Under the pieces are notes generated by a model that worked only from the letters and a program-made list of their open reading frames with translations, ran no database searches and was not told the DNA's origin. A stretch of DNA of 64,000 nucleotides, from assembly GCA_950097015.1 (NCBI GenBank), contig CATNEN010000038.1, positions 27,776,001 to 27,840,000 on the forward strand. Reading direction: 5' to 3'. Positions 1 through 15,970 of the stretch are shown in pieces. Source of the stretch: Macrostomum hystrix. Taxonomy: Eukaryota; Animalia; Platyhelminthes. The position numbers were made by a program, and so were the translations under genes. Every line of letters begins with the position of its first letter. The first letter of the stretch is position 1.

Positions 1-2083
1 GAGAGCGAATGCTGAGAACCAAGCAGGAAAGAAAGTGGAGTCCATAAAGCTGAAGCGCAAGTTCGAATCTTTGGTTAGTCACTGAGCACTGACCAATTAC
101 ATATACGAGCGTATACGAGATATATACCTATTTTGTGATATCTCGCATACCTTTAATTTTCAACTAGGTTACCCAGTTGGCAAAAATCGGAGGCAGTGCC
201 TCTTGTGTAATTCGTCTGCCAGACCGCAAACTAGTCATTCTTGAAACCCCTGATGTTAGTGGAGCCGCAGAGCGGACGAATTTCGCTTCAGTAAGTAACT
301 TCTAGCGCTTTAGTCCACATGCGAATACCAAGTTGAACGCGAGTTAAATCGTTATTCAACGTTTTGTCTCTTTCTAGTATGCGTTCTTTCGCAGCAGCGG
401 TTCTACCGATGACATGACAATCGAAGAGTTGCGCTCTTCATGCGCTTCCATGCTACAGCTTAAGTATAGTAAGTGCGACTATTCTGCATAATCGTATATC
501 ATTGTATATCATTCCGTTAAACGTATTTCAGAATGTAGAATGTAATGTAGTCCTCGATTGTGTATGTCCATCTATCCAAATTATGTTACTACTTTCAGAT
601 TATTATAATTAACTTGTATGAGCACAATCCTGTAATGCTTTTAGAGCAGTCAGGCGGCGGCCGTCGTCTGAACTACGTAAAATATCCAGCCCAGGGATTT
701 TGGTCCTCATGGCCTCTAGGCGTTCCACCGAATATTCCAGTCAATTCGATGTCAAAGGAGCAGCTTCTCAAAGTCTGGCGCGTCAGAGACGAGCTACAGT
801 TCAATCCCAGGAGCAGCTCCTCTGTTTCAACCGGATCGTTTAATCGAAATCTGGATCATGAGTCTGGGTTTGTTATACCATATTTTTTACATATTTTTTT
901 TAAGTTCGTTGTGCTTGGATTAGCAGCCTGCAAAAAGGCAATTCTGCCAATTTCGCTGACCCCTGAACAGACACGCGCATACTCACTAGAAAGTGTGTGT
1001 GTGTGTGTGTGTCTGTGTGTGTACTCTTGTACTCTGTATGTAAACTCTGCCCTGACTTCATCCTCAGGCAGCTCGTCGACGCTTGTACACTCACAGTGTG
1101 CCTCCGACCGTCCAATGCGTCAACTGCACTTCCCACTTCCCTATTTTTAAGCTAAGTACTCATGAACTCACTAAACTCCTTTTAGGTCATCCGTGGCTGG
1201 CGTTTTTTCGGGTTTTGTCGAATACGATAGCACCAATCAAGCCACCTTTGAGCGCTCATCTTCCGAGACCGCTTCCGATTCTGGTGCTGCTGCCTCGGTG
1301 CGCACGACATCTGGTGCTGCTGCCTTGGTGCGCACGACATCTGGTGCTGCTGCGTCGGTGCGCTCGACATCTGGTGCTGCTGCGTCGGTGCGCTCGACAT
1401 CTGGTGCTGCTGCCTCGGTGCGCTCGACATCTGGTGCTGCTGCCTCGGTGCGCACGACATCTGGTACTGCTGCGTCGGTGCGCTCGACATCTGGTGCTGC
1501 TGCGTCGGTGCGCTCGACATCTGGTGCTGCTGCGTCGGTGCGCTCGACATCTGGTGCTGCTGCCTCGGTGCGCACGACATCTGGTGCTGCTGCCTCGGTG
1601 CGCTCGACATCTGGTACTGCTGCGTCGGTGCGCTCGACATCTGGTGCTGCTGCCTCGGTGCGCTCGACATCTGGTGCTGCTGCCTCGGTGCGCTCGACAT
1701 CTGGTGCTGCTGCCTCGGTGCGCTCGACATCTGGTGCTGCTGCCTCGGTGCGCACGACATCTGGTACTGCTGCGTCGGTGCGCTCGACATCTGGTGCTGC
1801 TGCCTCGGTGCGCTCGACATCTGGTGCTGCTGCCTCGGTGCGCTCGACATCTGGTGCTGCTGCCTCGGTGCGCACGACATCTGGTACTGCTGCGTCGGTG
1901 CGCTCGACATCTGGTGCTGCTGCGTCGGTGCGCTCGACATCTGGAACCATTATCACTAACTCCGATCCTTCACCTCCTTTCTCGTTAGTCCAGAGTACAG
2001 TTGCCGGGTCGTCTGGCATTCGCGTTTTCTTTCGTTCCTCTGACTCAGTAGCGACAAAAGTTTTTCGAATAGACACCTCTTAG
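1..2083 (+). CDS. 5'-partial multi-exon gene encoding a TFII-I/GTF2I-like protein (N-terminal ES-x4-LAK domain, one I-repeat-like domain, 22 x 10-aa Ser/Ala/Thr tail)
   Basis: Exons <1-73, 168-290, 378-468, 645-867, 1186-2083. All introns are GT-AG, phases 0,0,1,2 join into one open frame ending TAG 2081-2083. Translation ...KLKRKFESLVTQLAKIGGSASCVIRLPDRKLVILET...NFASYAFF...TIEELRSSCASMLQLKYKQSGGGRRLNYVKYPAQGFWSSWPLGVPPNIPVNSMSKEQLLKVWRVRDELQFNPR... The family call is a by-eye match to recalled TFII-I sequence, not a search. Confidence 0.72.
920..1090 (+). mobile_element. Diverged 3'-UTR fragment of the LINE at 25030-25890, in an intron
   Basis: GCAGCCTGCAAAAAGGCAATTCTGCCAATTTCGCTGACCCCTGAACA matches 9973-10020 and the reverse complement of 25075-25125. 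Contains a (GT)n tract and the CTGCCCTGAC...TCAGGC hairpin. Confidence 0.55.
1281..1945 (+). repeat. 30-bp coding tandem repeat, 22 copies (CTGGTGCTGCTGCSTCGGTGCGCWCGACAT; SGAAASVRST)
   Basis: Directly visible 30-bp period inside the last exon of the TFII-I-like gene. Confidence 0.97.
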
Positions 2084-3607: not shown

Positions 3608-3886
3608 GTAGGATGACTGCGAGTGTATTCAATACAGCTGGGATGCAAGTACATGTAGGATGACTGCGAGTGTATTCAATACAGCTGGGATGCAAGTACA
3701 TGTAGGATGACTGCGAGTGTATTCAATACAGCTGGGATGCAAGTACATGTAGGATGACTGCGAGTGTATTCAATACAGCTGGGATGCAAGTACATGTAGG
3801 ATGACTGCGAGTGTATTCAATACAGCTGGGATGCAAGTACATGTAGGATGACTGCGAGTGTATTCAATACAGCTGGGATGCAAGTA
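3608..3886. repeat. 47-bp tandem repeat, 6 identical copies, interrupted by the Tc1-like element
   Basis: Units start at 3608, 3655, 3702, 3749, 3796, 3843. The unit resumes (TACATGTAGGATGACT) at 5486. Confidence 0.95.
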
Positions 3887-5485
3887 TTGCTTTTGTCGCG
3901 CTATGTGGAACAGTGGACATGCAAAACGGAACGGCCCATGGTGGAATTCTATGGCCAAGCGTTTGAATTCACACGAGAAAGAAGCCATAGACAACTCAAT
4001 TTGTCATGCTATGTGGAACGATGAGCCAGAATAGAAGGAACGATTTTAGTTTTTCAGAGACAAGAACACGCTTTCATTTTCTTTCGTTTGATCAGTTAAG
4101 CAATAATGGCGCCCCAAATTGCTGTACGTGATCGACGTACAGCGCATCGTCGCCGCCTTGCACCGTGGACTGTCGATGAAGGATGTGTCAGTCTTGTTAG
4201 GAGTATCCAAAACTTCTGTTCAGCGTATTCGGTCAACATTCGAACAAGCTGCATGGCAGGTTGGAAGCTTTGCCTCGTGGAGGATGCAAGGAAGCAAACT
4301 GCAAAATGGACGCAAAGATGCGAGATTTTTTACAACATGAGGTGCAGCGAAATCCCTTTCAAACGCTAAAGTCAATGGCTGAGAAGCTGATCGGACGCTT
4401 TCCTGACAAGCCACAGGTGAGCCTTAAAACAATTGATCGAACAATGGATGGTTTGCTCTTTACGGTCAAACTTGCTACCAAGGGGACGGATATATTCACC
4501 TAAACACCAACCGAGTCGAAAGCCTGGACGCCAGAAGCGAATACGCTAACTTCATGCTCCACTTAGCTCCAGGAGTTCACACTGTCTACTTAGATGAGAC
4601 CGGTTTTAACTTGTGGACCCGGAGGTCGTAGGGCAGGTCGGCTCGTGGACACCAAGTGTTCGCAAGGATTCGGCACGGTGACAACCCAGAGGGGTCCTAA
4701 CGTTACGGTTTGCATGGCAATTTCGTCGGAGTTCCGGTTGGTGCATTATGTCATCCAGAGAGGGGCCAAACGCAGCAAAGGTTTCAAGAATTTTTAGACC
4801 ACCTAGCAGACCGCTGCCATCAACTGGACCCTACCGGAAACTGGGTAATTTTTATGGATGGCCCAAATTTTCATCGTGGTGTGGAGATCCGAGAGAACCA
4901 TCGGGACAGAATTGTGACACGAATCCTACCCCCGTATTCACCATTTCTAAACCCGACCGAATTTGCTGCGTTGAAGTCAAATCTCAAGAACCGTTTGGCG
5001 GAAGCCGGCATGGTTGAGAATGAGCAAGTTTGAACAGAAGGAGTGACACTTAAGCAGTGGAGATTCATGCTACTTGAACGAGAGGCGACTGAAGCTGTTG
5101 GTCAAGCAATCACTGCGGACAAGTGCGCTGGCTGGGAGCTGCGCTGCAATCGATTGTTTGGATTGGGTTTGAGGCGACATCTGTTTTAGGGGTTGAAATT
5201 TTTTAACTTTGATGTTTCAATTGCAGACTTAAAATATGATTTATTGGAATGCAACTCTGAAAAATGTTCTGTTTCTGCTTAATTTCATTCTTTCTGCAAA
5301 TAAAATCTAAAATCGTTCCTTCTATTCTGGCTCATCGTTCCACATAGCATGACAAATTGTCTTGCATCAATTGCATGAGTTGTCTATGGCTTACTTTCTT
5401 TTGTGAGTTCAAACGCTCGGCCATAGAATTCCATGGGCCGTTCCGTTTTGCATGCCCACTGTTCCACATAGTGCGAAAAATACAA
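3887..5485 (+). mobile_element. IS630-Tc1-mariner DNA transposon (Gambol-like), full length but decayed
   Basis: Imperfect TIRs of ~165-180 bp (3887-4049 and 5307-5485), each with an internal direct repeat CTATGTGGAAC. TA duplication at 3885-3886 and 5486-5487. Transposase remnants inside. Confidence 0.93.
4106..5189 (+). pseudogene. Tc1/IS630-type DDE transposase with frameshifts and stops
   Basis: HTH (GLSMKDVSVLLGVSKTSVQRIR), LPRGG linker, YLDETGFNLW, QRGPNVTVCMAIS, FMDGPNFH, LPPYSPFLNPTE and ITADKCAGW are spread over several frames with internal stops. Confidence 0.9.
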
Positions 5486-5723
5486 TACATGTAGGATGAC
5501 TCTGAGTAAGTGAGTTAAGTGAAGTGGTAAAAAGCTTCGTACATATGTATATGGCAAATTCTTAACAAAATGTTTTTTGGGTGGCGTAAGGGTGAACGAT
5601 ATGCTGACGATGGCGGGCCAATCGTTGAAATTGCGTGAGCCGAAGTGAATAATTTCGACAAAGTAAGTTAAAAATCACTTTGACATGTCTACGCTCTTAT
5701 AATGTGCCCTGGGCATTCACGCT

Positions 5724-6146
5724 TGTCACGATGCCCAAGCACACTAATACGAGCATTTTAATTTAATTGCGTACACGCACGATGACTCAGTTTAAGTCAT
5801 CGTGAGGCAGATAACAGGTAACTGTCTGCCTGTCTCGCTTGACCTTGGAGCATGTGCACCTATGTCTGTTAGTTTGATGCGAATCTGCGGGGCTTCAGCC
5901 TCTCCCCCGCGCTGTCAGTATTTAAGAGGGCTTTCAGCCTGTGTGCCAGCGCGCTTTTTGACACCTTCTGCTGCGTGTTGCTTTTCGAGTCTGCATTTCT
6001 AAAACTGGTGCCGCTGGTTATTTTAGCGCCAAATAAATGTTCGCTTTAACTGTCCGGCCTCGTCCTATCGGTTGTTCGTGCCATGCATTTCTGCTGCTTG
6101 GACTACATCCTCTGGGAGTTAGCATTTTTTTGGGTTATTGCGATAC
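5724..6146 (+). mobile_element. Possible solo LTR
   Basis: Starts TGTCACGATGCCCAA, ends TTGGGTTATTGCGATA (degenerate inverted ends). TATTTAAG at ~5919 and AATAAA at ~6032. No TSD found. Confidence 0.3.
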
Positions 6147-7279
6147 CAAAATATTAATTTGTAAGTACTTTTACCTGATTGAAATGTGGTTCCAATCATC
6201 AAGGACAATTTATAATTGGACGAATCAACCAACGATTCATAATTTAAGCTTACGCTCGTAGTCCTTCTGGTATAATTGGCACGTTCTAGAACCGAAAAAA
6301 AGAAAGAAATCGGATGAATAAAACTTTATACAGACCTAAAATTTTATTCGCCGTTAATTAATTTCCGTTAAACACACAATCAGATATACAATTTATTTGG
6401 CTTTTAACCGTTTCCTTAAAAAAATCGCAGCAAGGAAAGCAATCCAATATACATTCATGATTGAAGTAACAAAAATGGAGATATTTTTGACTTACCATGA
6501 GCCTTAGATTTAATAAATAATGAACATAGCTTTGATTCTCATCAAAACGTGTCGTCTTTCCACAAGCTCTCTAAGACATCAGCGATCACGGTAGGTTCTA
6601 GATCAACTGAACTCAATTTGTAACAAAAACTGGGTAACTATCCTTTCTATATATTATGGATCAGAGAAACCATTCAAACAATCATAGGCATGCAATGTAA
6701 GGGGCGTAAGGAACAATTACGAGAATTTAGTTGGGCACAGGACGGAACCGGTATAAATGTAACAATTACTTGCTACGTTAAGCTACGCTTGTTTCTATGG
6801 TATTTATATAATGCCTCGAATTTAGTCTATTATACAATTAAAAAATAGCTAGAAGTACAACGTTCAGAAACAACACAAATATAAGTAGGGAGATACGAGA
6901 AGTTATACGAGAAGATACAAGAACCTGAAGTACAATAAGCTTGACTGATTTGCAAATACATAAGTGAACTGCATGTACATTACTAAACAAGAACAGCATT
7001 AAAAAGAATTTCTGAGCATAAGATTATAGCTTATCCTGTGCAAGTAACGTGACTTTAATCAACTGCGCTTGTAAGTGCCACAGATAACCTAAAGCCACAG
7101 CCACACTGCTGCTCTGAACATTTTTGCTGCCTATCGCTAGCTCGTACGTACGCGTTTTCTTAGCACATACATGTGTAAGTTAAACTGGTCTGGGAATCCA
7201 GAGCACATATGTCATTCACAAGTAAGTCAGAGAAAAAGAAGTGCAGACCCGACAACGCAGTGCATTAAGAGAACTGAAT

Positions 7280-10200
7280 TCATTCAGTGTCTGTGTCATC
7301 ATCCGATGCTGAAAGAACAGGAAGGAATGAAATAATAGTACGAAAAGCTATTTATAGCACAATGTAAAGCAGTACGAGCGACAAATCACGCGCGCATATT
7401 CGACAATTTGTTGCCTGTGTGGGCAACAAAAACATAATAAAGTGAGCCCGAAATAATCTAGTCTAAAGTGATGAGATACAAACACTTTCAATCTTTACAA
7501 CCTTCTGAAACTATCATACCATAACATGGACATGGTCGCCGAATCGTTTTTAAAAATTGGCAATTTTTACTTACCGGAGTCACTCATAGAGTAAACGTCA
7601 CACGTTTCTTCGTCAAGAGCCACAGAGCCGACTGCCTCCATCGCCAGTATGTTGGTGTCTTGAACCAGGGTTTTTTCTGATGGAAAGGCGGTGACATGCC
7701 GATGAAGAAGTCGACTGAGACCGATGAGCCGATTGTAAAGCACAGGAGAGTTATAATGACTTGAGGCAATGCGCGCCCAGGTTTGCTGAATGGCCCGAAG
7801 TAGAAAGCGGGTGGAGCGTCGAACTTCACACTCCACAATGGCTATCTCCTCTTTAGCTCGAAGGCGCATATGATATAGACGATAGGCAACCATCTGCGAC
7901 GTTGTATTTGCGTCCAATTGGCTAAGATTAGCTGTTTTAAAGCCTTCAGCTGCAAAGCTCGTAAAATCTTCTAGACTAAGTGGAGGCTCAGAAGATAGGC
8001 TAGAGTTGAAGCGACGAACTATGATCTCGCGTTTTTTATCGATTGCTTTCTTAGCCGACGCCAAGCGTTTTGCCATTTTCTGACCCCGATCGGTAGCGAC
8101 ATGCTGGGCCAGATATTCCCGCTCTGCGGTTAGTGCAGCTAGATCGTTGATAGCTAACTCACGAGTAGTGCTCACCCGTCTTTGATTAGATGTTGCCATG
8201 ATGGATGCACAAAAGTCTGGCGCCCAAGATTCCACGTACGCCTCAAAAGCAGAAAGCGTCGCTGAAAAAAGTAACGAAAAATTATTGCGGAAAAGCAAGA
8301 GTAAAAAGAGGCTACATTTAATCGAGTGCAAAGCATGCTGTACTAAATTAAAATGTTTTGCTTTTGTGCAAAGTTTATCTGACGAGTTCATACGTGAGAT
8401 TTGATGGCTCGAAGCAAATGCAGTTATCTCATTTTCGATGCGTGCATTGGTCCGCTGGACGTATTTGATGCGCTGCGTCAGCCAGTTAGCTACACGAATT
8501 TAGGCATCGGATGGGATGGTTGTTAAGTTATTAATTGGGATAAAACTTTCACGTGTACAGAATTAGCTGACTTTGATAACTTATTAGCATGAGCGCAAGA
8601 GAAAGAGGTCAAGAAGCACAAGATGCAAAACTTCCCGCAAAAGCATTTCCGGTTCATTTATAAACTACAAGTAGCTGGTATTGCCTTACTGATGTTGACG
8701 ATTAATTCGAAGTTCATGTCAGCAGCTAAAGTGTTTAAAAATCGACGTCTATTGACGTGAGTCATCTCCTTCGTTTGTGCGGAAAAACGCCGTAAATAGC
8801 TCCACAGTCGTTCGCAACCTTCGCCGTCTGTAAGACCGACATCCGGTTTGAAGCGTACGCCGTTTGTTAGCTGGCACGGCCATGAATGTCCGTAGGCATG
8901 CATTGCAGGCACTACGAAAGCAATTTGAGAATCCCGAAATGTAGCTTTCAGCTTGCATGCAATGTCATATGAGACAATAATGCGAGCCGCTGGGTTGCGT
9001 GCCACAGCTGTCTTCACTGATGCCACAGCGTAGTTGAGTCTAAGATGGAGTAGTTCGGATTGGCTAGCAAGTAAGTCCAGTGCATAGTACATTAAGTTTA
9101 AAGTTTCTGCGACCAACCCCAAACTTAATGTGGCTTTGCCTTGTAGCGGCTCATGACTAGCCGTTAGGATGCATTACCACTCTGCCAATGATCAGAAAAA
9201 ATGAAAAATGAAAATTCCTAACTAAAACTAAACTCTTAATCACATTACCGTTCTCCACTTGTAATCATATCCGAAAGCGTTAATATTGACTCGTGGCGGC
9301 AAGATGCAGCAAACAGGCCAAAGACATCCAAATTTGTTTTGTCTCTTGCCGTGACGAGCTGCTGACCTCTTTCACCTGCTTTCCAATTAGGACAACTCTG
9401 AGCATTGACTTGAAAGTCACCGGACATGTCTGCTTCCACAAAGTAGCTATTGGTGTCGTGCTCAGGAAAAGATGAAAGGCCGGCAGAGGCTCTGTGCCGC
9501 ATTCCGAAGCAGCCGTCGAGCTGAACAATCAATGGAGCCGACAAGGTATCTTGGCATTCGGACTAAACAGAGATTAGGAATGGTTAAAAAAATTATTTTG
9601 ACTAAAAAAGCAATACAATACACGATGGAGCACTGTTTGGAGAAAGTGGGGCAAAACTTGACGAAATTTCGAGGCTCCTATAAATTACATTTCGCACATG
9701 TGAATATTTACAATACCCATGATTAGATATAAGAGAAGGAAAAATGCTAATTCTTCGACTTAAACCGTATAGCAAGCTGGACAATTGGTCTCTCCATCCC
9801 ACTGAATTGAACTCAAAAGCTGGCGAAAAGCAGTCATTGAGCCGAAAGTATTCAGCGGCCGGTATAGATTCATCTGAAATAAAAAAGCTTGATAACATAT
9901 ACTACCTGTAATAATAATAATGTTAGCAGGAGGGCTGTGGGCAATGGCACATCATTTGGTGACACTAGACCTGCAGCCAGCGAGGAGGCAATTCTGCCCA
10001 TTCCGCTGACTCCTGAGCACACACGCACACAGATACCGTACGCAGGCACACACTCACACAGAGGTGTACATCTGCCCTGACTTTTTCATCGTCAGGCGGT
10101 GTACATTTTCTCTGTGCGTTGGAGGTTGGCCCTCATGGGCGTAAATTGCACGACAAGCCCCCAAGCCTTCTCTCCGCGGCTGCACCTCAAATTAATGTGG

Positions 10201-12021
10201 CCTTGCTCGCGGAATCGAGCTCAGGGACCGTGGTGCGAGAGGCAAACGCGTTAACCGCTCTGCCACTCACCCCCTCATATACTACCTATAAAAACATCAA
10301 GCATCAAAACATTTTGCATTGAATTCTGTCACCAAATAAATTTGGCTCCAAGAGTATACAGGTACCAAAACTTCCTGACTTAACGTGCATGTAGACAAAA
10401 AAATTACTTCATCGTACCCCTTGTCGGCCCCACATAGGCGATCTGAAAGATGCCATGGCACAACAAGCACTTTGTAGGGAGCCTGCACACTTTTTGTTGA
10501 TAGCGATAAGCTGTAAAAGGAGCTTGAAAGAGGCAGCAGTAACGCGAATCGCCAGATCTGGTTCAGCTTGCAGCGGCCAGAATCCATGGCGAACCAGTGA
10601 TGCGCGGATGTTGCTGCAATTACATACTTCTAAAGAAGCATCGAATTCGTCGCCTGAAATTGTGTTATGAAATTTGATTGGATTTCAGCGTAATGTATAT
10701 GTATATGATGTATGAGGTGGAGCGAGTGTATGTTGTGTATATGTTGTATCTCAATATCAGCACGATCTAGGATTAGAAACTAAGGGTGAGCTGCCGACAG
10801 CACAGCCACAGCCATTGCGTAGCGCATTTGAAGATTCACAAAATTAATCCCAGACAATGCTAGCACTCATTTAACAGCTGGGTGAACTGAAGCAATGCAG
10901 AGTTAAGTGTTGTGCTAATAGACAAAAAGTTTACAGTAAAATCAGGAATCGAACCTCGACCTTCAAGCCCTGAGTCGGACATTATAAACTACAAACCCAC
11001 ATGTCGGTAAGAAAGCAAGAAGGTTTTCCGCTTTAAAAGGTTTTAAAAAAGTAATTTGGCCCTGTACAAATAGTGATAAAAATCGTATAGGCATTTACTT
11101 ACCATTGTCATCAAAAATAAACACTTGCTTGACAAACGATGATCCCAAGCACGAGCATCGACGTTTCAGCACAGCGGGAGCTGTCAGTGGAACGTAAACA
11201 AGACCCTGTTGGAAGTAGTAAATTAAAAAATACAAACAATTCTGAATTCTGAGAATAAAAATGCAAATGATACAGTGAAAACACTGTAAAAAATACAATA
11301 GTATAGTGTATTGATAAACTAATCTTAAATGTCATAAAAATCATTCAAAGTGCACCGAAAGCCAAAACTGTAAAGGCTCGTTCACACTGCCATGAAATGA
11401 AGTGACTCGTTTTGGTGTACACCTACTTTGTGGTAAAATGAATGGGAATTAAGAAAGTAAATTACTGTGTTCTAGCCTACGTTTGATGGCAGTATGAGCC
11501 AACTTTAAAGCTTACATTCCACTGTTCCGCCACGTGCGGAGGATGATGTTTGTGTTGTTCGTCAAGGCAATTACGGCAGACTTGCAGTAAGTGGCATGCA
11601 CTGCACCGAAACGGCGCCTCATGTGTTTTACACTTTACGCAGTTGCCTAATGGGCTAAAAAAATCGCAGATTGCTGACTCTGCATCGCGCTGGCTATCTG
11701 ACCATGCCTTGGTAGCACGATTGATACGATCCTGATATTGTGTGTTGCCACACAGGGGTGGTGAAGCAGAACTGAATGAAAGGTGTTCTTCGGCACTGGG
11801 GGCAGATTCTTGATCATGTGGTCGTTGCGGCGGTCTGTGAAGGTTTTTTATACGCTAAAAACTTACAATTCTGTACATTTACGCGCAACGTACACTTTCC
11901 GTAATCACAGAACTTACAAAGAGCTAGTACCATCAACCGTTATCTTTCGCCTGCTAGCTCGCTGACCAGGTGTGTAGTGTCTTACTTTAAAGTGCAACTC
12001 AGTAACTTTTGCACGCAGCAT
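7280..12021 (-). CDS. KDZ (Kyakuja-Dileera-Zisupton) transposase with N-terminal CxC cysteine clusters; 10 exons, 781 aa, apparently intact
   Basis: Exons 12021-11918, 11834-11516, 11205-11103, 10653-10418, 9873-9766, 9562-9249, 9039-8690, 8489-8394, 8261-7575, 7308-7280 (2346 nt, all GT-AG, phases consistent). Motifs: CVKC..FRCSAC..CRNC..H..PPH..W; VCNC..LVRHGFWP; CPAC; LDGCFG; GLFAASCRH..GER; YDIACK; PAMHAYGH..CQ; GLTDGEGCERLWS. Confidence 0.92.
9960..10106 (+). mobile_element. LINE 3'-end fragment with terminal stem-loop, in a KDZ intron
   Basis: Reverse complement of 25031-25128. Ends in hairpin TGTACATCTGCCCTGAC-tttttcatc-GTCAGGCGGTGTACA. Confidence 0.65.
10120..10274 (-). mobile_element. 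tRNA-derived SINE (family A), in a KDZ intron
   Basis: Minus strand GGGGTGAGTGGCAGAGCGGTTAACGCG (A box) ... GAGCTCGATTCC (B-box-like). Related copies at 19150-19283 and 20280-20385. Confidence 0.7.
10850..11000 (-). mobile_element. tRNA-derived CORE-like SINE (family B), decayed
   Basis: Minus strand GGTTCGATTCC B box followed by ACACTTAACTCTGCATTGCTTCAGTTCACCCAGCTGTTAAATGAGT, which resembles the CORE-type SINE central domain. Confidence 0.6.
11371..11508. mobile_element. Degenerate PIF/Harbinger-like MITE in a KDZ intron
   Basis: Imperfect inverted ends TAAAGGCTCGTTCACACTGCCAT / ATGGCAGTATGAGCCAACTTTA. Confidence 0.45.
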
Positions 12022-12102
12022 ATTGCTAAAAAAATAATGCCTTATGAGTAAACACTAAACAGCGAAAAATGTCGATTTATAAAAGGAAGAGCAAGCTTAG
12101 CA

Positions 12103-14945
12103 AGAGGAGGATAGAGGAGGATAGAGCAGGGTGGAGGAGGCTAAAAGAGGCTAGAGGAGGTTGAGGATGGTGGAGGGTAGAGGATAGTGGGGAGGGTAGA
12201 GGAGGGTAGCGGAGGGTAGAGGATGGTTGAAGAGGGTGGAGGGTAGAGGATAGTGGGGAGGGTAGAGGATGGTGGGGAGGATCGACGAGGTTAGAGCAGG
12301 GTAGAGGAGGGTAGAGGAGGGTAGAGCAGGGTAGAGCAGGGTAGGGGAGGGTAGGGGAGGTTAGAGCAGGGTAGAGGATGGTAGGGGAGGTTAGAGCAGG
12401 GTAGAGGATGGTAGGGGAGGTTAGAGCAGGGTAGAGGAGGGTAGAGGATGGTTGATGGTAGTGGAGGGAAGAGGATGGAAGGGGGTAGAGGAGATTAGTG
12501 GATGGCTAGGGAGGGTGGTGGAGGGTAGAGGATGGCGGGGAAGATAGAGGAGGGTAGCGGAGGGTAGAGGATAGTGGGGAGGATCGACGAGGTTAGAGCA
12601 GGGTAGAGAATGGTTGAGGAGGGAAGGGGGTAGAGGAGAGTAAAGACTGGTGAAGGAGGGTAGAGGATGTTGGGGAGGATAGAGAAGGGGAGTGGAGGGT
12701 AGAGGATGGCGGGTAGGAAAGAGAAGGGGAGTGGAGGGTAGAGGATGGCGGGTAGGAAAGAGAAGGGGAGTGGAGGGTAGAGGATGGCGGGGAAGATAGA
12801 GGAGGGTAGAGGAGGGTAGAGAAGGGAAGGGGGTAGAGGAGAGTAGAGGAGGGTAGAGCAGGATAGAGCAGGGTAGAGGAGGGTAGAGGAGGGTAGAGGA
12901 GGGTCGATGGTCGATGGTAGTGGAGAGAAGAGGAGGGAAGGGGGTAGAGGAGAGTAGAGGAGGGTAGAGGAGGGTAGAGAAGGGTAGAGGAGGGTAGAGG
13001 AGGAAAGAGCAGGGAAAGATATAGTAGAGTAGAGTTGAGTAGAGGAGAGTAGAGGAGGGTAGAGGAGGAAAGAGCAGGGAAAGATAGAGTAGAGTAGAGT
13101 TGAGTAGAGGAGAGTAGAGGAGGGTAGAGCAGGGTAGAGGAGGGTAGAGGAGGGTAGAGGATGGTAGTGGAGGGAAGAGGAGGGAAGGGGGTAGAGGAGA
13201 GTAGAGGAGGGTAGAGCAGGGTAGAGCAGGGTAGAGGAGGGTAGAGGAGGTTGAGGTTAGAGGAGGGTAGAGGAGGTTGAGGTTAGAGGAGGGTAGAGGA
13301 GGGTAGAGAAGGGTAGAGGATGGTAGTGGAGAGTACAGGAGGGTAGAGCAGGGTAGAGGAGGGTAGAGGAGGGTAGAGGATGGTCGATGGTCGATGGTAG
13401 TGGAGGGAAGGGGATAGAGGAGAGTAGAGGAGGGTAGAGCAGGGTAGAGGAGGTTAGAGGAGGTTAGAGGAGGTTAGAGGAGGGTAGAGGAGGGTAGAGC
13501 AGGGTAGAGGAGGTTAGAGGAGGTTAGAGCAGGGTAGAGGAGGGTAGAGCAGGGTAGAGGAGGTTAGAGGAGGTTAGAGGAGGGTAGAGAAGGGTAGAGG
13601 AGGGTAGAGGAGGTTAGAGGAGGGTAGAGCAGGGTAGAGCAGGGTAGAGGAGGGTAGAGGAGGTTAGAGGAGGTTAGAGGAGGGTAGAGGAGGGTAGAGC
13701 AGGGTAGAGCAGGGTAGAGGAGGGTAGAGGAGGTTAGAGGAGGTTAGAGGAGGGTAGAGGAGGGTAGAGCAGGGTAGAGGAGGGTAGAGGAGGTTGAGGT
13801 TAGAGGAGGGTAGAGGAGGTTGAGGTTAGAGGAGGGTAGAGGAGGGTAGAGAAGGGTAGAGGATGGTAGTGGAGAGTAGAGGAGGGTAGAGCAGGGTAGA
13901 GGAGGGTACAGAGGAGGGTAGAGGATGGTCGATGGTCGATGGTAGTGGAGGGAAGGGGATAGAGGAGAGTAGAGGAGGGTAGAGCAGGGTAGAGGAGGTT
14001 AGAGGAGGTTAGAGGAGGTTAGAGGAGGGTAGAGCAGGGTAGAGGAGGTTAGAGGAGGTTAGAGGAGGGTAGAGGAGGGTAGAGCAGGGTAGAGGAGGTT
14101 AGAGGAGGTTAGAGGAGGGTAGAGAAGGGTAGAGGAGGGTAGAGGAGGTTAGAGGAGGGTAGAGCAGGGTAGAGCAGGGTAGAGGAGGGTAGAGGAGGTT
14201 AGAGGAGGTTAGAGGAGGGTAGAGGAGGGTAGAGCAGGGTAGAGCAGGGTAGAGGAGGGTAGAGGAGGTTAGAGGAGGTTAGAGGAGGGTAGAGGAGGGT
14301 AGAGCAGGGTAGAGGAGGTTAGAGGAGGTTAGAGGAGGTTAGAGGAGGGTAGAGCAGGGTAGAGGAGGTTAGAGGAGGTTAGAGGAGGGTAGAGGAGGGT
14401 AGAGCAGGGTAGAGGAGGTTAGAGGAGGTTAGAGGAGGGTAGAGAAGGGTAGAGGAGGGTAGAGGAGGTTAGAGGAGGGTAGAGCAGGGTAGAGCAGGGT
14501 AGAGGAGGGTAGAGGAGGTTAGAGGAGGTTAGAGGAGGGTAGAGGAGGGTAGAGCAGGGTAGAGCAGGGTAGAGGAGGGTAGAGGAGGTTAGAGGAGGTT
14601 AGAGGAGGGTAGAGGAGGGTAGAGCAGGGTAGAGCAGGGTAAAGGAGGGTAGAGGAGGTTAGAGGAGGTTATAGGAGGGTAGAAGAGGGTAGAGAAGGGT
14701 AGAGGATGGTAGTGGAGAGAAGAGGTTAGAGCAGAGTAGAGGAGGGTAGAGGATAGTAGTAAAGGGAAGAGGAGTAGAGGGAAGAGGGAAGGGTGTAGAG
14801 GAGAGTAGAGGATGGTGAAGGAGGGTAAAGGATGGTGGGGAGGATAGTGAAGGGTAGTGGAGGGTAGAGGATGGCAGGGAAGATAGAGGAGAGTAGTGGA
14901 GGGTAGAGGATGGTTGAGGAGGGCGGAGGCTAGAGGAGAGTAGGA
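12103..14945 (+). repeat. 2.8-kb polypurine array, 10-bp core AGAGGAGGGT / AGAGCAGGGT / AGAGGAGGTT
   Basis: Directly visible. Homogeneous centre, degenerate flanks. Starts ~80 bp upstream of the KDZ ATG. Confidence 0.95.
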
Positions 14946-15824
14946 AAGCCTTTAGGATAGTAACTAGCTAGCTGGCAATAATGTTTCTTTTTATTTTGCT
15001 AGTAGACATAATAGATTTACAAGACATAATAGATCAGGAGCTAGATCAATATAATTATATACATTTTGTCAGTCAATAAAAAGAACATTTATATAGGTAG
15101 GGACCTAGCTATTTTTAGGTATTTAGGTATATCAAAACATTTTTCATATCAATAGCTACCAAGAGAATTTCATTTAGACTAGTCAGTTTATTTAAATACT
15201 GGTGTACTTGCATTGAATCTAGTTATATTTGTCAGGCCATTGATTATCAATTGTGAAAGTGGTTTTGAAGTAGGCTATAATGCTGTATAGCAGTTATATA
15301 TATATATATATATAGGCCTATATATATATACACTAAACATATTTTAGCTAGGCTACACAGTACACAGAAGCACATAAGCAAGCTATACCTAAAGCTATAG
15401 TCGATATATGATATATAATTTTTTGCTATTGTCTAATATCCTTTTGAATAGTCATATTCAACTAGCTCAGCCTAGCTACTATTAGTGCTAGTACTAAAAA
15501 TAGAATTAGCAACAGCCAATTCCAATTATACGATAGCCTAATTGTATAATTACTGGCTTAAGCTTTCACTAGCCTAAACATTATGTTAGATTAGTTGTCC
15601 TGTTGCGAAACTTATTTAACATAAGCAGCATGCTTTATATTTATATTTCAGCACGTATTTATATATAGCAGCACGTTCGACGTTTGCCCCACATAAAAGC
15701 GTTGTATTGGCTTTGAAAGCTATAAGCTGCGCGTATCAATACGCCGCTGCGCGCAGAGTACCGCTTTGTAGGCTCGTGTTGTAACGCAGATTTGGCTTTA
15801 CGGAGTGTAACACGGGTGCACTTG

Positions 15825-15970
15825 TAATAGAAGTAACGGACTCACAAAAAGTCCATTCCGTTACCAAGTCCGTTACCTAACAAAAAAAGTAACTTCCGGT
15901 AGTAACGCTTCTAAAAACGTAACTTCCGGTAGTAACGGAGGAACGGAGGAACGGAAGTTGCCCAACACTG
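15825..15970. mobile_element. DNA-transposon-like right terminus with subterminal repeats
   Basis: Clustered GTAACGGA / TCCGTTAC / GTAACTTCCGGTAGTAACG motifs in both orientations, ending GTTGCCCAACACTG (reverse complement CAGTGTTGGGCAAC). No partner end found in the window. Confidence 0.55.

Follow-up and report, generated by a model that had tools for sequence, protein, structure and literature searches.

Is a short, intron-rich gene at the left edge of a flatworm sequence an invertebrate member of the TFII-I family, or does it belong to something other than the host? TFII-I is a vertebrate factor tied to Williams–Beuren syndrome, and the sequence in question (hereafter the window) is a stretch of 64,000 nucleotides from Macrostomum hystrix (GCA_950097015.1, contig CATNEN010000038.1, positions 27,776,001–27,840,000). 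An initial annotation of the window had read four short exons at positions 1–867 as a single-repeat TFII-I homologue of the host. We found that the gene has five exons and lies inside a mobile DNA transposon of the Kyakuja–Dileera–Zisupton (KDZ) class. It is probably the second, accessory gene of this cut-and-paste element, encoding a protein with one GTF2I-like domain for which we propose a helper role.

Structure and expression of the gene

The exons are given in window coordinates, as are all junction labels (L001 positions equal window positions + 1500, and L005:9717 corresponds to C38:27775717).

1–73, plus strand: 3′ end of exon 1; frame open from the window start, entered unspliced by RNA contigs, joined at 73/168
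168–290, plus strand: exon 2; 41 codons, phase 0; N-terminal region, from paralogue alignment and hhalign
378–468, plus strand: exon 3; 30 codons plus 1 base; first helix of the GTF2I-like domain from about 399
645–867, plus strand: exon 4; remainder of the GTF2I-like domain, which extends to about 820 and in which W, W-P and F are invariant
1186–2083, plus strand: exon 5; low-complexity tail of a 10-residue tandem repeat, then the stop codon

All four introns have canonical borders, each starting with GT (at 74, 291, 469 and 868) and closing with AG (last base at 167, 377, 644 and 1185). The junctions drawn in the initial annotation (73/168, 290/378, 468/645 and 867/1186) were all confirmed as GT..AG skips by spliced RNA contigs on L001:1–2780 from four public runs (X1, X2, X3 and X7) of three studies, and the exon translations equal the peptides given there. 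The joints are present in an X7 contig (organism C; 0 mismatches), in an X2 contig (organism A) and in a relative from the wastewater metatranscriptomes X1 and X3, which has about 93–97% exon identity (3–8% mismatches; about 10% in the 5′ part). Because these data are contigs, they establish that the spliced form exists and do not give the level or the ends of the transcript. The K of ‘KYKQS’ is encoded by a codon split as a and ag over junction 468/645. Most of exon 5 is taken up by a tandem array of 22.2 copies of a 30-bp unit (1280–1944), which encodes the 10-residue repeat; the stop codon, TAG, is at 2081–2083.

Exon 1 extends unspliced beyond the window start in the RNA contigs, and the start codon for which the initial annotation had pointed upstream is likely to be the ATG at C38:27775717, the first fitting one in frame, 284 bases before the window start. 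The match of the RNA contigs of the wastewater relative begins 4 bases 5′ of this ATG. From the ATG to about L005:9930 the sequence resembles repeated DNA motifs more than protein, and a candidate spliced-leader acceptor directly before AACTTAAGC (L005:9936) is a possible alternative start.

Two features adjoin the gene. Directly upstream of the likely ATG, before the window, is an insertion (L005:8442–9713; C38:27774442–27775713) that X7 RNA contigs traverse into exon 1; it is located elsewhere in the wastewater relative, as the match breaks at L001:1213. The insertion contains a 242-amino-acid open reading frame (ORF; L005:8666–9394) with a GIY-YIG endonuclease-like motif, recognized by eye, as in Penelope-like elements; Pfam gave no match to this ORF. 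Immediately after the stop codon (2237–2614) follow 23.6 tandem copies of the 16-bp unit TTGCATTTAGATAGTG.

The gene lies inside a mobile KDZ transposon

Both the gene and a KDZ transposase gene are contained, in convergent orientation, in an element of 21.8 kb (C38:27769981–27791818; window −6019 to 15818) with the following parts.

−6019 to about −1630 (L005:3981–8370), before the window: left arm and left end
7567–9544, minus strand: KDZ transposase (PF18758), checked exons; extent of the whole gene in the initial annotation, 7280–12021
12102–15818, minus strand: right inverted arm, with the element end at 15818
15819–15825, no strand: right copy of the target-site duplication CACTTGT; the left copy stands directly before the left end

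The transposase was identified as KDZ by PF18758 matches on two minus-strand ORFs (8661–9122, expectation value (E) 7.5e-28; and 9248–9544, E 2.3e-11). The 80-base termini of the element are identical to each other and begin CACCCGTGTTACACTCCG (CACCCGT ends), and the 7-bp duplication is found on both sides. The element has inverted, satellite-like arms of 3.7 kb (87% inverted match over 3.9 kb), made up of kilobases of the 10-bp unit CTCTACCCTC and its variants; these arrays are candidate binding sites or a candidate source of fold-back structure.

Empty sites and further copies document that the element has moved. Both flanks are contiguous at C39:10231694–10232203 and likewise in four further instances of the host repeat, giving five empty sites. 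Two more full-length copies with the same termini are present, of 21.76 kb on C3 and of 21.36 kb on C31, the latter flanked by a different duplication, ACTATTA. The flanks of these two copies are unrelated, which identifies them as separate insertions and rules out that they are haplotigs. Window positions 1–900 are matched at 100% by all three copies, indicating that the family moved very recently. The element thus combines terminal inverted repeats and a target-site duplication with presence at unrelated loci and an empty site.

At the C3 copy (G000:C3:2806324–2828079) the 7 bases next to the two ends do not match (CTGGGAC and ATGCATA), the KDZ exon match is in two parts and a third identical terminus is found at C3:3124835, features that may point to recombination between copies. 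Three pairs of termini two bases off the 25-base end of the element, 19–29 kb apart (G000:C30:4415085–4435701, C38:4259508–4278935 and C39:8820857–8849523), suggest by their sequence further related elements outside the exon 4 and KDZ match lists.

The accessory gene diverges together with the transposase

About 19 diverged relatives of exon 4 (25–41% identity) are encoded in the genome. These paralogues have intron positions and phases in common, none is intron-less, and each carries its own 10-residue repeat tail with a variable copy number. At no fewer than 13 loci, an accessory paralogue is found 4.6–8.6 kb from a KDZ paralogue (50–62% identity), without exception on the other strand and in convergent orientation. 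When seven subfamilies are compared, pairwise identity in one protein varies together with that in the other (Mantel r 0.62; 37 of 5040 permutations reached this value), and the three closest subfamily pairs are identical for the accessory gene and the transposase. A sister subfamily is represented by three copies on C41, C1 and C7 (97–99% identity), which have sharp borders, both genes inside, inverted ends of about 580 bp from CACCCGT and the 7-bp duplications GGAAAGG, ATCCAAG and GCTTTAG.

This pairing bears on two other explanations of the gene. It could be a captured passenger, that is, a host gene fragment carried along with no role in transposition. This is most improbable given that the gene recurs, with unchanged exon structure and always convergent, in at least seven KDZ subfamilies while its proteins are only 19–51% identical, that it tracks the transposase tree and that no free-standing host copy was found in the genome search. 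The initial annotation had instead proposed that the host itself encodes a single-repeat TFII-I homologue, which would work as a transcription factor in the cells of an invertebrate; in favour of this, the order of domains that it gave, the I-repeat-like fold described below and the expression of the gene can be cited. We regard this as very unlikely, because the gene is located within transposon borders that have a target duplication and an empty site, is present in three identical copies at unrelated loci and has some 19 paralogues, nearly all of which stand beside a KDZ transposase and diverge with it; moreover, the N-terminal motif residues on which the proposal drew are not conserved in the paralogue family. 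A second gene of the transposon is thus the reading that we carry forward.

Some members of the family differ in their tails or their completeness. The ORFs of the C41, C1 and C7 copies (L016, L017 and L018; 383, 403 and 347 amino acids) have different numbers of tail repeats, so that tail length changes between near-identical copies on the time scale of transposition. One partial copy of exons 2–4 (L004, G000:C1:10726351–10726851, minus strand; 90% identity) ends within exon 4 at unrelated sequence and is therefore probably a dead fragment. Another KDZ lineage (C38:24.60 Mb) is without this partner gene; the second gene of that element gave no match to the exon 2, 3 or 4 profiles.

A homologue in Macrostomum lignano

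Outside this genome, a phmmer search of 1.84 billion representative proteins with exon 4 yielded one true relative (E 3.5e-4), the 225-residue protein A0A1I8GVQ9 of Macrostomum lignano (P0004), which is 37% identical to exon 4 over 52 residues (136–187). Using hhalign, the paralogue profiles of exons 2 and 3 were placed on its residues 63–102 (P 5e-4) and 106–134 (P 3e-4), respectively, and BLASTP of the same two exons against P0004 found nothing. Exons 2, 3 and 4 are thus collinear with P0004, which differs from the M. hystrix protein in being shorter and without the long repeat tail. Three other phmmer matches (GntR-like, ComGG-like and leucine-rich repeat) were rejected as spurious, being repeat proteins with scores inflated by many stretches. 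No further relatives were found by protein searches with P0004, with the ORF around exon 4 or with the exon 4 profile, and two metagenome scans gave no relative and a single bacterial false match. The UniRef name of P0004, ‘Plus3 domain-containing protein’, is not borne out, as P0004 matches no Pfam family at E up to 10; nor were Rtf1 Plus3 structures among its fold matches.

Predicted fold of the exon 3–4 domain

P0004 was folded with the exon 4 pieces as the alignment, because MAFFT piled the fragments of exons 2, 3 and 4 onto one region and only the exon 4 pieces could serve as alignment depth. The model has a mean predicted local distance difference test score (pLDDT) of 67, with about 90 at residues 150–190 and 52–69 at residues 112–150. 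Searched with Foldseek against 350,542 PDB chains, it returned nuclear magnetic resonance entries of GTF2I domains at ranks 1–6, 8, 11, 15 and 47; all ten listed entries of this domain fall within the 49 matches (E 0.5–10). The core superposes on GTF2I domains with a root-mean-square deviation of 1.6–2.1 Å over 40–41 columns in three entries, and 63–87 residues align with solved I-repeats at 13–20% identity. When Foldseek was run with an AlphaFold 2 model of exon 4 itself (pLDDT 92–96 at residues 21–50), three of the eight rows were GTF2I domains, at ranks 1, 2 and 5. In the ESM Atlas, which relies on a separate predictor, residues 108–195 matched three GTF2I-bearing clusters with template modelling (TM) scores of 0.69, 0.68 and 0.67, followed by unnamed basidiomycete clusters (TM 0.60–0.64) that are the nearest by language-model features (0.86–0.90). 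The GTF2I I-repeat is the best structural match of the exon 3–4 domain and, for this region, the sole one.

The sequence searches, made exon by exon, provided one match to the same family. When twelve exon 4 pieces were scanned singly against the 24,736 models of Pfam (E up to 10), only two families appeared: GTF2I (PF02946) and one row at chance level. The former was matched by paralogue L015 (12.1 bits, E 0.25), with residues 21–53 on profile positions 43–74 of 75 and in the register that the initial annotation had put forward (P-x-G-[VI]-P ... L-x11-F). For the single hypothesis ‘GTF2I’ among so many models, a chance origin of this sequence match is far less likely than its nominal E value implies.

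Several results weigh against a GTF2I assignment. None of the fold scores is significant singly. The L015 score, the best for the family, is far under the gathering score of PF02946 (27 bits), so that the proteins fall outside this family by the Pfam measure. The profile test to which the initial annotation was open went against it: PF02946 did not match any exon, or P0004, at E up to 10, or the six-frame translation of the whole 220-Mb assembly. GTF2I chains were likewise not among the matches of a profile of the twelve exon 4 pieces to all PDB sequences. Each protein has a single GTF2I-like domain in place of the five or six tandem I-repeats of TFII-I and GTF2IRD1, the rest being an N-terminal region and a low-complexity tail. 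The N-terminal residues that had been likened to TFII-I (LAK and C of ‘ES-x4-LAK-x6-C’) vary among paralogues, the exon 2 region conserving GG ... P ... ET ... G across the family instead, and the N terminus of P0004 was modelled as long helices that are not specific; any likeness of this part to TFII-I, as proposed from sequence, is putative.

These observations leave room for the possibility that the gene is a transposon accessory gene whose GTF2I likeness is convergent or an artefact of prediction, the domain being a lineage-specific small alpha/beta module with no TFII-I ancestry. We consider this unlikely, albeit worth keeping in mind. Against it stand the ten GTF2I entries among only 49 matches from so large a set of chains, with six at the first six ranks; the agreement of the second predictor (TM 0.69); and the finding that the sole Pfam family besides the chance-level row was GTF2I, in the expected register. 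Given the agreement between two predictors and between three aligners, together with the one Pfam match to the expected family, an I-repeat-like domain is the best reading, and the modelled exon 3–4 domain probably has this fold. Of the initial claim, the likeness of this domain by fold and by the weak L015 match therefore stands, and significance at the level of Pfam does not. We infer that the domain is homologous to GTF2I repeats.

Comparison with known systems

The predicted fold resembles that of the GTF2I repeat of vertebrate TFII-I, GTF2IRD1 and GTF2IRD2 (PF02946; solved domains include 2EJE, 1Q60, 2D99 and 2DN4), and the second half of the domain has the I-repeat register P-x-G-[VI]-P ... 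L ... I-x-F. Unlike GTF2I repeats, the domain has invariant tryptophans (W-x2-W-P) in place of the usual motif, and unlike vertebrate TFII-I genes, the gene is borne by a transposon and encodes a tandem-repeat tail. The family had been described as vertebrate-specific, which is too strong for the domain as such: PF02946 also occurs in homeobox proteins of cnidarians that form an ESM Atlas cluster. Our literature search found no clear statement on I-repeats outside vertebrates.

To our knowledge, the partner genes of KDZ transposons are poorly understood. KDZ elements are known mainly from fungi, and some carry TET/JBP genes (PMC12730594). The M. hystrix element is like them in its PF18758 transposase, terminal inverted repeats, target-site duplication and extra gene within the element; it differs in its animal (flatworm) host and in a partner that is an I-repeat-like protein, not TET/JBP. 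PIF/Harbinger transposons have two genes, for a transposase and a Myb/SANT DNA-binding protein (PMC12730594). The present element is similar in that its second gene, too, accompanies the transposase and encodes a protein that may bind DNA. The transposases of the two systems belong to unrelated superfamilies and their accessory proteins have unrelated folds, and the likeness is one of possible working, not of membership. Transposons are known to be annotated misleadingly as GTF2IRD2, in that case through the hAT part of GTF2IRD2 (PMC10641963). The literature search turned up no GTF2I-like domain described in a KDZ element and no paper that names GTF2I along with Kyakuja or Zisupton; KDZ transposons, like GTF2I repeats, are known, and a stable KDZ partner gene with an I-repeat-like domain is unreported in the literature searched.

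Within the element, between its two genes, one further transposon is nested.

3883–5488, plus strand: Tc1/mariner-type element (DDE_3, E 8e-11) with terminal inverted repeats and dozens of genome copies at 84–96% identity

Proposed role and implications

The accessory protein falls into three segments: a helical N-terminal stretch that leads into a short conserved region (exons 1–2), one domain of about 80 residues with the predicted I-repeat fold (exons 3–4) and a fast-changing tandem-repeat tail that is probably disordered (exon 5). I-repeats of TFII-I and GTF2IRD1 serve in DNA binding and protein contacts, and it is on this basis that we propose a helper role: the single domain may bind the DNA of the element or its transposase and so help or regulate transposition. 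Comparable in this to the Myb-like second protein of PIF/Harbinger elements, the protein could be a transposition helper or regulator, a suggestion that we make tentatively and with some doubt. More speculative, and in our estimation rather improbable, is that the I-repeat of vertebrate TFII-I goes back to an accessory module that bound DNA in DNA transposons, of which the flatworm KDZ partner gene, and perhaps the basidiomycete clusters, may be surviving transposon-borne members. If true, TFII-I would be one more family of transcription factors with an origin in mobile DNA.

For annotation, the locus carries a caution: a gene model that, read alone, appears to be an ‘invertebrate TFII-I’ is the cargo of a transposon. 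For KDZ biology, it reveals an animal KDZ lineage that retains a conserved, spliced and expressed second gene. If the homology to GTF2I repeats holds, this gene would provide a testable model of how KDZ ends are recognized, and of a possible transposon origin of I-repeats.
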